DNA of 64,000 bases from Pavona decussata (GCA_977016875.1 CDRNST010000043.1:1364001-1428000); one strand, 5' to 3'. Positions 18,089-38,141 are shown, counted from the stretch's first letter. A program made the numbers and translations. Notes: generated from the letters alone by a model not told the origin.

Positions 18089-19342
18089 TCAGTAGGACGC
18101 CAAAGGCGTTTGACCGGCAGCAATGCTACTGGTAGTGTCCATATGAAAGTGCTCATGATTCTGAGTAACCGGTAATCGATTGAACCACTCCGACATTGGT
18201 GGGTACGTTGACGCGGTGTGGAAGGCTGGCGAAGTAGTCCGAGTGGACGATACGCTTTCCTCTTGAGGGCTCGGTGTACCCAGTGATTCTGAAGGCTTTG
18301 CGTGAAGCTTCATGTGTTTACGAAGTGAACTTGGATGAGTATAACTCTTGTTGCATCCTTCAATCTTGCATATGTATGGTTTATCGGACGTGTGGACATG
18401 CGAATGCTTCTTTCTGTCGCTGGAATTTGCGAAGCGTCGATCGCATCCCGGATATTCGCACATAAATGGCTTTTCGCCAGTGTGCGTTCGCTTGTGAATC
18501 TTTAGGTTTTCAGACCTGGCAAACAGCTTTCCACAGCCAGGGAAGGGGCACGAGAAAGGCTTTTCTCCCGTATGCACACGAATGTGGTTGATAAGCTTAT
18601 ACTTGGCCTTAAAGGGAAGTCCATTACGCGGGCAATCCTTCCAAAAGCACACATGTGTGCTGCTTTCCGGTCCTCCAACATGATCCTCAGAGAGATGAGC
18701 CACAACGTCGTGCATTCGAAAGAATTGTCTCCCACAAGGCTTTCCTTTGCTGCCCGGTTCGATCCATTCACAAACCACCACATGACTCAGAGGTTGGCGC
18801 AGGTAACTCGGCATGGCTAGTCCTGGGTGTTGCATGAACTCGTAACGTGGAGCAGCGAAAGGGTTTGCAAACTGCGAATGGTGAGTGGGATCGAATTTTT
18901 CGTCTCGTGGATAATAGTCTATGCCTTTGGAGAATCTGTAAGGCCCTGTTAGTGGCCCGCCAGTTTGTTGATAGTGAGAACCGGGCGGGTCATGAGCGTG
19001 AGCGACGGAATAAAAGCCGTGAGGTGAGCCATTGGTACCGTCGCGATGCGGCTCTTGCAGGCTGTTGTAATGGCTTGGATGAAGCTGGTGAATTACGGAG
19101 CCTGGGAACATGTTGTGTTGTCGCTGGTTGCTCCCTGCTCTAGCGCCAGTCGTGTCAGACGCCAGATTTATACCACTGTTAGGTGGGCGAACAGCTGCGA
19201 CGCTAGAACTTGGAAAATTCTCGGGCCCGGCAAATAGGAACTCATGGGCCGACGGACGAGCCGAGGATCTTACACCTTGAGCTGGTGTAAAAGGATAATG
19301 CGAGCCATTTGGAACGTTGAATGTGTCTTGCACTGTACTCAT
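18089..19342 (-). CDS. zic: Zic (zinc finger of cerebellum / odd-paired) transcription factor, intronless, 417 aa
   Basis: ZF-NC motif [17 protein letters not shown] followed by five C2H2 fingers with Zic-diagnostic sequences ([88 protein letters not shown]). The first ATG is at 19342; the ORF-track start at 19366 is TTG. Confidence 0.98.
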
Positions 19343-19599
19343 TTCTTTTGTCTCTCGCACCTTCAACGGGCTGCTTTTTCCACTATAAAATCGCGTGAGA
19401 AACCGGACAGAAAACTCAAATGATTCAATCGGGCTGGCTCTTTGTTTAATTCACAGTTTTGTCATCCTCCCGTGGAACTAAATAAGCATCTGTGTCGTGC
19501 TGAGCAAGTCGAACGCCACGGCTGAGAAGTGCACGAACATTCCACGGAGCCTCTTCACACAATGTAGCGCGGTTAATTTTCGAAGATGCGCGGAATTCA

Positions 19600-33420: not shown

Positions 33421-34701
33421 ATGGAAGCAACCATTTATGAGGATCAGAGCTTCTTGTTTTCGAATAAAAATTCCTACGCACAAGACAATGGAAAACTGTT
33501 TTTAAATTTACCGAGCGATTGTAAAAATCCTGGAAAGAAAGAAGACTTTGATATATCTGATTTGCTCAGGTCTCCAGACATTGGAATTTCGTCACCAGAC
33601 CTTGAAACAATAGTGTGGAGGAATTTCCCGGAGACATGTTCGATAAAACTACAATCAAGTTCTCCTCCACCGCCGTCACTTTTTGTTCCACAGGAGGATT
33701 ATTCTACACAACAAGTCACCGCAGAACAAGAGGTATTTGCCAGAGGATTTACTGACGCTCTACAACGCCTTCGGGAAGAGAGAGAAGTAACACAAATAAG
33801 CAATTCCGAGACGCCCACGTCCGATGATTCAACCCGAGTCGTTGATGACTCGAAGTGCACTTTCATTTCTTACAGATTTGATTCATCGTATCGTTTGCCG
33901 TCTTTTCAAGACACTTTCGTACCTGCTAAGTTGACTGGTACGGTAAAATCAAAAACAAGGCAAGAGATAGACAGATTTACGTTTCGCGAGCAGGAAAATG
34001 GACAACAACTTCAAGAATCGGAGGATTCCGAGTGGTTCAAAGTAGAAACATTAGAAGAGGGATTTTCTGGGCAACAACAATGTTCATTCAAAGATAACTT
34101 ATCAAATCAATCCAGCGAAGATTCAGACGAATCATCTACTAATTCTCCTTCTCTCCTCAGTCCTGACTCTGAGGAAGCAACACAGGAGAGCTGCTATGAG
34201 GAATTCGAAAACGACTGCAAAGCTGCAGAAAGCATGGAGGTTCATCATGGCGTCTACGAGCACGACAACTTTGAAGCTGGCGTCGGCTGGACCCAGGCGA
34301 GAGACGATAACATTCAAGATACCCCGACACCTAAACACTGGTTAACGGTCCACACAAAGCTTTATAACATGTCTGTGTTAAAGCAGGAGGTGGACACTTT
34401 AGAGGAACGCTCGCAAACCGCCGCCATTCCCGGCGAGAACATCGATGTGCAGGGATTTATTAAAACGGAACGAAAACGGCGAAAGAACCGTTTAGCGGCG
34501 TGGAAATGCCGTCAAAAGAAACTTATACGTGAATCGAGGCTCGAGACGACTGTTGAAGAGCTTTACGCGGAAAATTCTAGGTTAATGGAAGAGCTGGAGA
34601 AATTAAAACGAAAAAGACAACAATTAGAGCAGACGTTTATTAAACATGTGAGTGGTGGATGCGAAGAGGCCCATGTGCAGTACACTGAATCTTTCAGTTA
34701 A
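33421..34701 (+). CDS. jun: Jun-family (AP-1) bZIP transcription factor, divergent, intronless, 426 aa
   Basis: Matches to c-Jun motifs: MEATIYED (METTFYDD), KLFLNL (delta/JNK-docking LxL), DLLRSPDIGISSPDLE (S63/S73 region), VTAEQEVFARGFTDALQRL (VTDEQEGFAEGFVRALAEL), bZIP IKTERKRRKNRLAAWKCRQKKL, five heptad leucines and terminal HVSGGC (HVNSGC). Confidence 0.95.
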   Translation: MEATIYEDQSFLFSNKNSYAQDNGKLFLNLPSDCKNPGKKEDFDISDLLRSPDIGISSPDLETIVWRNFPETCSIKLQSSSPPPPSLFVPQEDYSTQQVTAEQEVFARGFTDALQRLREEREVTQISNSETPTSDDSTRVVDDSKCTFISYRFDSSYRLPSFQDTFVPAKLTGTVKSKTRQEIDRFTFREQENGQQLQESEDSEWFKVETLEEGFSGQQQCSFKDNLSNQSSEDSDESSTNSPSLLSPDSEEATQESCYEEFENDCKAAESMEVHHGVYEHDNFEAGVGWTQARDDNIQDTPTPKHWLTVHTKLYNMSVLKQEVDTLEERSQTAAIPGENIDVQGFIKTERKRRKNRLAAWKCRQKKLIRESRLETTVEELYAENSRLMEELEKLKRKRQQLEQTFIKHVSGGCEEAHVQYTESFS

Positions 34702-34769
34702 TGGTGATAGTTAACAATAGAGGCTTCTGATTTCTTTGCCGCCTGGTAAGTAAAGAATTCAATCTCAGC

Positions 34770-34785
34770 ATTATTTAAGAATAAA
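34770..34785 (+). terminator. Candidate AU-rich element and polyadenylation signal of the Jun-like gene
   Basis: TTATTTAA followed by AATAAA at 34780-34785, ~80 nt after the stop codon. Confidence 0.4.
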
Positions 34786-35899
34786 TGAAAAACAGTGGAC
34801 AATGAACTTAAATACTAAGGTATACAATTTTGGTCATACAGTTATGTTTTGATTTAGCTTTTAAAAAATGTCTACTTAACAATTTGATTTTGGAAAGAAA
34901 TAATTGCCGAATTAATATTTTCCTGTCTCAATTTCCTTCTGCGCTTTTGTCAAATGTTGAATAGAAAGTAAGTATTCGTTCATTCAAATAGAGACGTTTT
35001 GTCACCAGCTGCGCTATTACAACATCAACAGTTTGCACAATGCACTGCATGTGTGAATGCCTCATGAAGTGTCACATCTAAAACGAGTGTAGTTCTGAAT
35101 GCTGTTGTTCATTTATACTTAAGTCGTTTATCTATAAACGCATTCCCAGTCAGCTTTCACGAACTCAAGTGTAATTGTTCTTGGTTACTATGATGTTTGG
35201 GCACGAAAAAATCCTTTCCTAAGTGACAGATTAAATTTTGCTACTGCTTACTCCCAACCAAGTTACCCGTTCATGTTCAAACTCACACTTCGAACATTTA
35301 ACTGGTTCAAACTTTGGATGAAATCCTCAAGTGTGAATGTTCACACGAAATCTATCCTGCAATTCTTTCCTGTTATCATGGCGTACAAAGTGTTTCTTAA
35401 GCTTTTATTTTACGAACGAAATGCTGCAGGGTGGCCATTCAACTGGGAACGCTATTGAATGCTATTTTTATGCTGGACGAGGTGATTGTCACTTGAATCT
35501 AATTCTTGGATCATTGCCATAGAAATGCTTCCCTAAGGTACTTTTTTAGAGAAAATTTTGCAGCTCCAGCACATGGACGCTGGGCTTGAAACGATTCAAC
35601 AGTCAGACACTTATGCCTTCTCTTGCTAAATTCATTCATTCCTGCCAGAATTTGGATTTAATATTCTTCAAATGATAGAAATGGATTTAAGTCGTAAACA
35701 TCTCGTTATTTGGTATCATTTGAGACCAAATTCAAAATCAAATTCTCCTCACTGTGAATAAAGCAGAATCCCGAAGTGATAGCTTCTTTAAATCTGCCGT
35801 CTGTTCCCTTTTGTAAGAAAAAATAACATTTTGATTATACCAGAAGAGAAATTTAATTGTAGTTTGCAGTTTTTAACGAAATACACTTGACCGTCAGTA

Positions 35900-36751
35900 C
35901 ACCTTTTGCCCTTCATTATCAGGAAATACATTTTCATTAGTGTTAAAAATTAAATCATAAAAGCGAATGTGTAATCATTGTATGAAAATAGACAAACGTT
36001 TTAATTTTCGGTGTCGTCAATAAGGCGTTTTACACAGAGAAGAATATTCATTAATGCGAATATCAGTTCAATTTAATGGAAATAACAAACTTTTAAGAGA
36101 ATGAGCAAACATTAGACGCTTCGTAATGTTCTTTAACGAGGAAAAAAATTCATTTAAACAGAGATACAGTCAGCGTTACAATCAAGCAAGTCTTAGCTCT
36201 ACCTTCAATCAACTCCCTATTCAAACATCGTGGTCTATGTAACTCTGCCTAAACCTAAACCACGCTGCACATTTTCTTGCAATTATCGTGTTCACGTTTC
36301 TCCTCTTCTCGCGGGGATCTTCAAACGCCCTAACTATCCTTTCACGATGCTCAATTGGGACACGGTTTCGACAAACTCTGTGCTCCATTACTGCGAAACC
36401 AGTGTGCACATGTTCAGCATCGTTTTTAAATTTAAGCATCCATATAAATCCATTTGGAAATTAGTCAGAAACCACGTATCTAAAAATCTTTTGTAGTTGA
36501 AATTTTATTCGCGCAATGGAACGTTAACCCTAGGTCAATGAATCTTCATTCGCACTAAAGAATGTTGCTTTCGATAAAACGCTTTTCTGATTGGCCTTAA
36601 TGAATCTTCTTTTCGATGCAAAACTCCTTAATGACTCTGCCACAAATTGAAATGTTTCATTTCCTAGTTAAACTGATTATACATTAATTTTATTGACCAA
36701 TGTTTTCGCGCTAATGAAAATATATTTCCTGATAATGAAGGGCAAAAGGTG
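35900..36751. mobile_element. Non-autonomous DNA transposon with long TIRs and CAC...GTG ends (Transib-like)
   Basis: CACCTTTTGCCCTTCATTATCAGGAAATACATTTTCATTAG matches the reverse complement of the right end at 40 of 41 nt. Weaker complementarity continues for ~250 bp. Flanks are CAGTA / CAATA. Confidence 0.8.
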
Positions 36752-38141
36752 CAATAGCAGCACCGCCTTTTAACTGACGTAACAAACAGCAGCAAAGGAG
36801 AGCGTTCTGATCAAGACCTTTCATTTACTAAACCGCGTTATACTACTTCGGTAAAGCTTGGCTCTGATGTTAAGGGTTAATACTCTTCGAAAAATATTTG
36901 CTGGGCGCGTGGCCCGCCTGTCCTTTTTTAGGACCAAATGTGTCATCTTCCCTTTCCACTTTGAGGGTTCTTACCATACCATTTGGATCGGTACATACAT
37001 TATATGCAGGGTATGTCAGGGAATTTAAAGTTTAGATTTTGTTCATACAGAATTGTCAGACATCAAGGCAAAACTGCGTTGACTATTGACTATTACAGGG
37101 AATAACTATAACAATTACTCGTTATAAGTAAGATTTAATACGATAAACTACTAGAGATCCAATTACAGACTCCCTGGGGAGGTGTAATTTTTTAATTAAA
37201 CAACAAATATGAAAGATTGCAAATATAAATTACAAATATTTTTTATTCCTTTTTAGGTATTCACCTAATGATATCCTAAACAAGCAGAAGTTATCTGACC
37301 TGACTGGATGAATTGTAGAGGTCTAAAGATCTCTTACTTGACGTTAAACTGATTTAAAGATAAGAAACTTTCTCTTTATTTTGCTTTTTTATGACGTTTT
37401 TCTCTTTCTTTTGTTGCTCATCCTTTCTTCTCTTTAAGTTTTTTTGGGCGGTGGTCGCACAAAACTGAGATTTTTATGCAAAATCATGTTTTTTTAAATA
37501 TTTTTTCCCTGCGCGATTCGTAATCTCACTGAAATATCAATTTTCCACCACCATATTACCATGAAATTTGCTCGTGAGAAGTTCAAATAGTTAGTACTCT
37601 AAAATGTCCCAAGGGGTCCAAACCTACTGGGCCATCATCAGCCAGTTTCTAGAATCGACCCTGCAAGTGCTTTGCCAAGTTTGTACCAGTTACTCTGATG
37701 AGCTTTTCCAACACTTACAATCAACCTTGAAATCAGAAGTATATCTACTAATCGTCTTAAACTGAATTTACAAAGACATTTCAATTTTAAAACATTTGCT
37801 AAATTTTCAATTTACGATCCTAAGCACGGGAAAGGGAAGAAAGGAGAATAGGGCAAGAGAGCATTATTGGTGATCCTCCTTTGATAAAAGTAGTACTTCA
37901 ATGTTAAGGCTCCTCCTTCACTTATCCCTTTTCTAAACGTCCTTTTTTCGTTTTACCGATAATGCATCAAAGGCCTCGCGTCCACACTATCGTTTTCGAA
38001 GCGTTTTCCCCGTCCACGCAATAATGCCTGGAAATGCTAATAAACAACTTGGAAACATTAGCACAACCATTTGTGCATGTGACAAATAGACGCGCACTCT
38101 TCGAAAGCCTTTACAGAAAAATACGAGCGATTTCTCTCGTT

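Follow-up and report, generated by a model that had tools for sequence, protein, structure and literature searches.

W-Jun, a coral Jun paralogue with an aromatic residue in its basic region and an arginine in its zipper core

The basic regions of bZIP proteins are among the most conserved DNA-reading helices, and the position that follows their Ala-Ala pair normally holds a small or polar residue. In the DNA complexes of GCN4 and of Fos-Jun, the residue at this position lies beside the base-contacting face and is directed towards the DNA backbone, not the bases. AP-1, to which the Jun and Fos proteins contribute, has been repeatedly implicated in heat and UV stress responses. The closest described cnidarian system is that of Cnido-Jun (NVE16876) and Cnido-Fos1, which are cnidocyte-specific paralogues in Nematostella (Sunagar et al. 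2018, PMC6161364).

Here we describe a Jun gene of a different kind, which we name W-Jun, from a window of 64,000 nucleotides of Pavona decussata (GCA_977016875.1, CDRNST010000043.1:1364001-1428000). All positions below are those of this window, and all features lie on its plus strand. W-Jun occupies 33421-34701 as a single open frame of 426 amino acids plus stop, and the ORF list and Pfam agree on a complete, single-exon coding sequence whose product is identical to database protein P0001. We consider it reasonably probable that W-Jun is a functional, transcribed member of a hexacoral-restricted family of Jun paralogues, and that it serves as a specialised AP-1 component with a changed set of partners. 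Pfam recognises a bZIP_1 domain at residues 347-404 (3e-11) and a Jun domain (PF03957) at residues 45-133. The latter is marginal, at 27.0 bits against a curated cut-off of 26.7, which counts against our reading; relatives in the same family score 28-33 bits, and the locus itself scores 28.1 bits in a Jun search of its own genome. The best matches among solved structures are bZIP chains of JunD and c-Jun (7e-8 to 1e-5), and the match to Fos (0.02) is five orders of magnitude weaker than that to Jun.

The comparison with c-Jun and JunD shows how much of the family plan has been kept. W-Jun shares with them a Jun domain with a docking-like motif and two Ser-Pro sites, the Asn, Ala, Ala, Cys and Arg base contacts, Asn at zipper position a2, five Leu at d, a terminal His, the H-V-x-x-G-C motif and a coding sequence in one exon. 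Unlike them, it has Trp for Ser after Ala-Ala and Gln for Lys after Cys-Arg; its a3, a4 and a5 residues are L, R and F where theirs are A or I, V and V, and its g/e charges are self-complementary. It also has three residues fewer between the Ser-Pro sites, no T-P-T-P motif, and a disordered insert of about 200 residues that carries three family-specific motifs. W-Jun thus has the Jun domain, the base-contact residues, the docking motif with its Ser-Pro pair, the HVxxGC motif and the tree position of a Jun protein, and departs from two usual Jun characters, namely a small or polar residue such as Ser following Ala-Ala, and Val or Ile as an aliphatic a4. From the Fos/ATF3 side it has the basic a4 residue (R399), and it lacks both a Fos-type basic region and an intron in the bZIP. 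On this sequence evidence, W-Jun is a Jun-family member by descent and not a Fos/ATF3 member by descent. The preliminary description of this DNA had called the gene a Jun paralogue, and the Pfam Jun and bZIP domains, the JunD and c-Jun structure matches, the C-terminal HVxxGC and a clade placed inside Jun in the tree all bear this out.

The most conspicuous departure lies in the basic region (34459-34530), which reads ...K-N-R-L-A-A-W-K-C-R-Q-K-K-L... and in which the listed read variants are all synonymous. Codon 34501-34503 is TGG and encodes W361 within N356-R-L-A-A-W-K-C-R364-Q, and the five base-contacting residues, N356, A359, A360, C363 and R364, are all present. The earlier observation of Trp where Jun has Ser, with N, A, A, C and R intact, is thus correct, as is the codon given for it; the interval named there, 34459-34662, takes in the basic region and the zipper. 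Among 342 Jun-like proteins, which are all those fetched with a recognisable basic region, this position is W in 77 and Y in 4, and all 81 belong to the W-Jun clade; the other Jun proteins have S (208), T (22), R (16) or Q (12), with M, A and D once each. Tyr takes the place of Trp in one acroporid lineage. As the step from Trp to Tyr requires two substitutions in the codon, it seems to be aromaticity as such that has been retained. Three linked changes of the bZIP are fixed in W-Jun, namely Trp (or Tyr) after Ala-Ala, Gln after Cys-Arg and Arg at a4, and the zipper further has Leu at a3 and Phe at a5. Compared position by position, the basic region of W-Jun nonetheless remains on the Jun side, with 15-18 of 30 identities to the coral Jun genes versus 9 of 30 to the Fos-like genes.

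What the aromatic residue might do can be approached through known complexes. We take the position of W361 to be equivalent to Arg240 of GCN4, Ser of c-Jun and Ala of Fos. A W-Jun dimer would still bind TRE- or CRE-type half-sites. Because the position equivalent to GCN4 Arg240 contacts the backbone, the side chain of W361 would most likely leave the core half-site as it is and instead affect affinity or the contacts with backbone or flanks; this structural role is transferred from the GCN4 and Fos-Jun structures, which is a weaker point of our reading. A Trp fixed through the whole history of stony corals can be regarded as a natural experiment in the change of bZIP recognition.

A residue this unusual invites the suspicion that the gene is misassembled or is a decaying pseudogene. 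We reject this reading, found nothing in its favour, and regard its probability as negligible. The frame is open throughout, and X1, which is a contig from a separate run, covers the gene and differs from it eight times, never at 34501-34503; the difference nearest to the Trp codon, 34509 C>T, is synonymous. The preliminary description had asked for the TGG to be checked in reads and orthologues, and it is found both in this contig and, as W or Y, in about 80 orthologue sequences that cover both main stony-coral lineages. A word search returned 20 related cluster representatives, and the named orthologues, from Acropora (five species), Montipora, Stylophora, Oculina and Desmophyllum, are 66-83% identical to W-Jun with an identical basic region; Stylophora LOC111325407 and Acropora millepora LOC114956912 are among the orthologues. 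The listed read variants include four in the bZIP, none of which changes a residue, and five upstream of it, of which four do.

W-Jun is transcribed. A second contig (X6), probably derived from RNA, follows the genome to 34748, and its loose end maps at 37260-37289. It defines a GT-AG intron in the 3'UTR (34746-37256), with donor CCTG|GTAAGT and acceptor TTTTTAG|GTATTC, and it is because this contig is spliced at a canonical intron that we take the gene to be expressed. The donor lies 44 nt after the stop codon, so that the coding sequence occupies one exon and is followed by a 3'UTR exon. A metatranscriptome contig from a related coral covers the whole W-Jun ORF without joints. We looked for TGASTCA and TGACRTCA sites that might serve autoregulation: the roughly 6 kb flanking the ORF in each direction contain none, and across the whole window these sites occur at chance level.

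W-Jun is the fourth Jun paralogue in its genome and was previously undescribed. Contigs C78, C46 and C128 of the same 602-Mb genome each carry another Jun gene, and an identical copy of the C128 gene lies on C375; all three are single-ORF genes with Ser after Ala-Ala, encoded by TCC, TCT or TCA. It had been conceivable that the gene was the sole canonical Jun of the species, with the same residues throughout Cnidaria. This does not hold, as three Ser-type Jun genes coexist with W-Jun and the W or Y residue is confined to its clade. The coral AP-1 toolkit therefore includes four Jun genes, not one. A literature search found no publication on members of the W-Jun clade, on coral Jun paralogues or on aromatic residues in bZIP basic regions. 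In databases, the clade members are labelled 'Jun-like', 'uncharacterized' or 'hypothetical', and behind the 'Jun-like' labels stands a paralogue with, probably, targets of its own.

Since a second kind of Jun is already known from Nematostella, W-Jun could in principle be the coral orthologue of Cnido-Jun, and a long insertion, which W-Jun has too, speaks for this. Both are cnidarian Jun paralogues beyond the stress-type c-Jun, and both are single-exon genes. We nevertheless reject the identity as scarcely tenable. Both published Cnido-Jun morpholinos, when reverse-complemented, match the locus of one Nematostella protein (P0113, 'transcription factor Jun [Nematostella vectensis]' at NCBI) exactly, one across the ATG and the other in the 5'UTR, so that P0113 is NVE16876. 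Unlike W-Jun, this protein has a canonical basic region, N-R-I-A-S-S-K-C-R-K, and Val at a4, and it falls in a different clade. Across its entire length it shares 57% identity with the C46 gene, which is thus the coral orthologue of Cnido-Jun.

The same separation appears in a maximum-likelihood tree of 38 proteins with ATF4-like and C/EBP-like outgroups, from which the spliced coral Fos-like genes were left out. P0113 groups there with Exaiptasia, the C46 gene, an octocoral protein and Aurelia Jun3 (starred support). The W clade is monophyletic (support 95/99), separate from the Cnido-Jun clade, and is borne on a stem of 1.31 substitutions per site. Relative to the outgroups it lies inside the Jun group; the tree fixes no sister clade for it among the other Jun proteins and carries a warning of long-branch attraction to the outgroup, which is a further point against our reading as it stands. 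The length of the stem shows that W-Jun evolved fast after duplication, and the gene then froze.

The family extends beyond the corals in an altered form. In an exhaustive search, only three 50%-identity representatives had a W-type bZIP, and four proteins matched W-Jun residues 1 to about 250 much better than an ordinary Jun does. Two relatives are P0217, encoded in Nematostella vectensis (GCA_000209225.1), and P0220, encoded in Actinia tenebrosa (GCA_009602425.1; species from PMC10700113). Both share with W-Jun the Jun N-terminus and two family motifs, F-I-S-Y-x-F-x-S-x3-L-P-x-F-x3-F and W-x-x-V-E-T-L-D/E-E-G-F, whereas their bZIP is decayed or missing: in Nematostella the Asn, Cys and Arg contacts are gone from the basic region, and the Actinia ORF ends before any bZIP, with no bZIP remnant found downstream. 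The intact W-type bZIP has been kept in Scleractinia and in proteins P0019, P0020 and P0021. By the presence of the family motifs in sea anemones, the W-Jun family is older than the stony corals. Sea-anemone relatives that lose the bZIP while keeping the JNK-type motifs point to a DNA-independent role of the N-terminal half. This complicates our reading of W-Jun as an AP-1 component, in that the conserved function of the family may lie in that half.

Several conserved motifs lie in the N-terminal half. K25-L-F-L-N-L30 (33493-33510) is the counterpart of the JNK docking motif in the c-Jun delta domain; L28 is invariant and L30 nearly so across W-family, other cnidarian and bilaterian Jun proteins, and a docking function is presumed here by analogy with c-Jun. 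Two Ser-Pro sites, L49-R-S51-P-D ... S58-P-D-L-E62 (33565-33606), align with S63 and S73 of c-Jun as putative phospho-acceptors, and S51, P52, S58, P59 and E62 are invariant in an alignment of W-type, other cnidarian and bilaterian Jun proteins; it is between these sites that the W clade as a whole has lost three residues, and the T-P-T-P motif is absent throughout it. The suggestion that JNK-responsive motifs are retained at the N-terminus therefore holds at the level of sequence, in that L-x-L-N-L and both S-P sites are invariant. Further on, the Jun-domain helix V-T-x-E-Q-E-x-F-A-x-G-F-T-x-A-L... (33715-33801), predicted at residues 101-127 with a pLDDT of about 80, has T100, E102, Q103, E104, F106, G109, F110, A113 and L114 invariant.

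Three motifs are peculiar to the family. K-C-x-F-I-S-Y-x-F-x-S-x3-L-P-x-F-x3-F (33853-33918) occurs in 25 family members and is absent from the other Jun clades; F148, Y151, F153, S155, L159, P160, F162 and F166 are invariant in all 25, including the sea-anemone proteins without a working bZIP. In W-x-x-V-E-T-L-(D/E)-E-G-F (34033-34065), W205 is invariant and E209, T210, E213, G214 and F215 are nearly so. The third, K-H-W-L-T-V-H-T-K-L-Y-N (34333-34368), lies upstream of the bZIP and is found in all clade members with an intact bZIP. The AlphaFold model of W-Jun (mean pLDDT 51.5) is confident only in helix 101-127 and in the long bZIP helix, residues 343-424. The family-specific motifs fall in sequence predicted to be disordered, and they look like short linear motifs.

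The leucine zipper (34531-34647) has changed as well. When the heptad register is set by the invariant Asn, the a residues are E371, V378, N385, L392, R399 and F406, and the d positions are five Leu followed by H409, which ends the zipper. The reading of the a positions as E, V, N, L, R, F against I, V, N, A, V, V in c-Jun, the latter taken from vertebrate sequences, is therefore accurate. Glu at the first a position is common to all three canonical Jun genes of this genome and is no peculiarity of W-Jun. The Arg at a4 (codon 34615-34617) is: it is present in 80 of 80 scorable W/Y-type proteins and in none of 260 other Jun proteins, where a4 is V (214), I (38), L (6), S (1) or A (1), and never charged. 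The Trp and the zipper-core Arg are strictly coupled, which suggests a joint rewiring of DNA recognition and of the choice of partner. Beyond the zipper, a Jun-type C-terminal H-V-x-G-G-C is followed by a clade-specific tail, E-E-A-H-V-Q-Y-T-E-x-F (34645-34698); in our alignment (A1), H90 and C95 are invariant across W-type, cnidarian and insect Jun proteins, and the tail occurs in the W clade only.

A basic residue at a4 is the state of the Fos side, as the preliminary description had proposed: it is K in FosB, and K (C15) and R (C486) in the two Fos-like genes of this coral. W-Jun is like the zippers of Fos, FosB, ATF3 and JDP2 in its basic a4 (checked on FosB and the coral Fos-like genes), its hydrophobic a5, its His at d5 and a Gln/Asn-type residue after Cys-Arg. 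It differs from these proteins in lacking a bZIP intron, an acidic g/e surface and the N-K-x-A-A-A-K-C-R-N string, and in having a Jun N-terminus. The description of the zipper core as Fos/ATF3-like is also supported by identity counts, which are 16 of 36 with the C15 Fos-like gene of the same genome versus 10-13 of 36 with its three coral Jun genes. W-Jun may have converged on a Fos-like role.

We compared the partners that the zipper would accept by counting charged g-e' pairs, a matter of qualitative rules and not of energies. The W-Jun homodimer has six attractive pairs (R-E, E-K and K-E, twice each) and none repulsive, with R-R at a4. With each canonical Jun there are three attractive pairs and one repulsive, with R-V at a4; with the C15 Fos-like protein, three and one, with R-K; and with the C486 Fos-like protein, three and two, with R-R. 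The attractive homodimer pairs are kept in the most distant members of the W clade, and the core contains a single clash, R-R at a4. Judged by such customary rules, W-Jun would be capable of homodimerisation, would fit Jun partners and would be a poor match to Fos-like proteins. The self-complementary charges would allow the homodimer, while the Arg at a4 would disfavour pairing with the Fos-like proteins of the coral, whose own a4 is Arg or Lys, and would tolerate partners with Val at a4, the canonical Jun proteins, much as Fos, ATF3 and JDP2 pair with Jun. Of the earlier proposal on dimers, the attractive g-e' pairs stand; its 'obligate heterodimer' is not supported, because the homodimer scores better than any heterodimer that we counted.

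A stricter form of the same idea would have W-Jun unable to homodimerise and acting only as the Fos-like side of heterodimers with canonical Jun, in a modulating or repressing role like that of JDP2 or ATF3. We consider this unlikely, while granting that several facts fit it well: the clade is fixed for an Arg at a4 that no other Jun protein has, this Arg matches the state of FosB and both coral Fos-like genes, it would face a Val in canonical Jun just as in Fos-Jun, and the zipper is nearer to a Fos-like gene than to the Jun genes. The balance of homodimer pairs, six to none compared with three to one for each Jun partner, and their preservation in distant clade members point the other way. 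It also speaks against this form that ATF3 and JDP2 homodimerise with an a4 residue like that of W-Jun. Our preferred reading, in which the homodimer is allowed, has its own weak point here, since the R-R pair at a4 and the E-E pair at a0 could in combination leave a homodimer that is in practice too weak.

The Fos-like genes of this genome, whose spliced bZIP exons we read one by one without joining them, add another dimension to the comparison. One of them (C486) has T, R, R, R and L at the a positions. The small gene on C15 has the basic region N-K-V-A-A-F-K-C-R-Q-R-R, a residues S, N, L, K and F, and a zipper that ends in His; its full ORF of 193 amino acids, the one Fos-like ORF that entered our comparisons at full length, is found in a naturally contiguous, cDNA-like contig (L033), and its best solved-structure matches are FosB and c-Fos (about 5e-14). 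The Phe or Tyr at its aromatic position is conserved in four related loci, and Gln after Cys-Arg is common to it and W-Jun. In these coral Fos-like genes an intron lies inside the bZIP, and the bZIP of W-Jun is uninterrupted. As a bZIP, W-Jun scores 62 bits against Jun and 43 bits against the Fos-like protein (43% identity over 54 residues). Behind the shared aromatic residue and Gln there could be a common DNA target, partnership between the two proteins, or gene conversion.

Partnership would mean that W-Jun and the C15 protein form a hexacoral-specific AP-1 pair, both aromatic and reading a modified site. Their a2 to a5 residues (N, L, K, F in the Fos-like protein) and the final His are almost the same, the aromatic position of the Fos-like gene is kept as Phe or Tyr in its four related loci, and Gln follows Cys-Arg in both. 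Set against this are the Arg that would lie opposite Lys at a4, one repulsive E-E pair, and the Nematostella and Actinia relatives of W-Jun, which have no working bZIP, and together these make the pair decidedly unlikely. Gene conversion or recombination, in turn, would have put the bZIP part of the F-type Fos-like gene into a Jun gene, in place of convergence by point mutation. The shared aromatic-K-C-R-Q string, the excess of zipper identities and the 43% identity over 54 residues agree with such a mosaic, which we nonetheless find very unlikely: the intron inside the Fos-like bZIP has no counterpart in W-Jun, the N-terminal part of the W-Jun basic region and the residues after its zipper are of Jun type, and the bit scores favour Jun, while the margin in identity is small. 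A broader conjecture, which we put forward as speculative and rather unlikely, is a hexacoral 'aromatic AP-1' code in which Jun paralogues (Trp or Tyr) and small Fos paralogues (Phe or Tyr), with the aromatic side chain at one and the same basic-region position beside a common Gln and with near-identical zipper cores, would, alone or together, read a site that canonical AP-1 does not, insulating a lineage-specific programme from the stress AP-1 network.

As an observation in its own right, the parallel aromatic residue in W-Jun and the C15 Fos-like protein is the most intriguing unexplained feature that we encountered.

The window's tryptophan-bearing Jun-type bZIP protein belongs to the W-Jun family. 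In sea anemones, we observe one family member in Nematostella vectensis (L037, 1501-2742) whose basic region has decayed, and another in Actinia tenebrosa (L038, 1501-2523) from which the bZIP is entirely absent. Because both retain the N-terminus of Jun proteins together with the motifs specific to the family but lack a working bZIP, their sequences suggest a DNA-independent role for the N-terminal half of the protein. P0216, a close relative of the W-type bZIP protein P0019, has lost its basic region while keeping the K-R-K-R zipper heptad (L039, 1501-2715, whose translation is not exactly identical to the database protein); in this lineage of the family, DNA binding may have decayed a second time, independently.

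The coral genome also has two Fos-like genes. A small Fos-family gene on the minus strand of contig C15 (exon parts L021, 1501-1608, and L030, 9176-9400; related loci L033-L036) encodes a product of 193 aa, as read from the cDNA-like contig L033. Its basic region, A-A-F-K-C-R-Q-R-R, carries Phe where W-Jun has Trp, a position occupied by Tyr in one of the related loci, and the core of its zipper, with N, L, K and F followed by His, almost matches that of W-Jun. It is a candidate for the coral equivalent of Cnido-Fos1. A second Fos-like gene, on the plus strand of contig C486 (exon parts L017, 1471-1581, and L031, from 6835), has the basic region N-K-I-A-A-T-K-C-R-K-R-K-R-E, and the a residues of its zipper read T, R, R, R, L, with Arg at three a positions in a row. 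Its core is even more charged than that of vertebrate Fos.

Among Jun proteins, P0249 (297 aa) has Met at the position of the W-Jun Trp and Gln after Cys-Arg (A-A-M-K-C-R-Q-R-K), and is otherwise an ordinary Jun, with a Jun domain scoring 127 bits. In our tree, the clade of Nematostella Cnido-Jun (P0113, P0126, P0136 and locus L002) has starred support and includes both Aurelia Jun3 and a protein from an octocoral. With the sequences sampled here, the paralogue therefore seems to predate Hexacorallia, an age that differs from the origin proposed for Cnido-Jun previously (PMC6161364). The third canonical Jun gene is present in two copies encoding identical proteins (L004, C128:402516-403382; L005, C375:17646-18512), probably because one contig is a haplotig or because the gene was duplicated very recently.

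Within the window, the W-Jun 3'UTR contains a canonical GT-AG intron (34746-37256) that starts 44 nt past the stop codon and is seen in one spliced contig. Elsewhere, a GC-rich block (48% GC, versus ~38% in the surroundings) contains a minus-strand ORF of 425 aa (18092-19366) with C2H2 fingers as well as a zinc-finger domain of the Zic type, which is probably a single-exon Zic-family gene.
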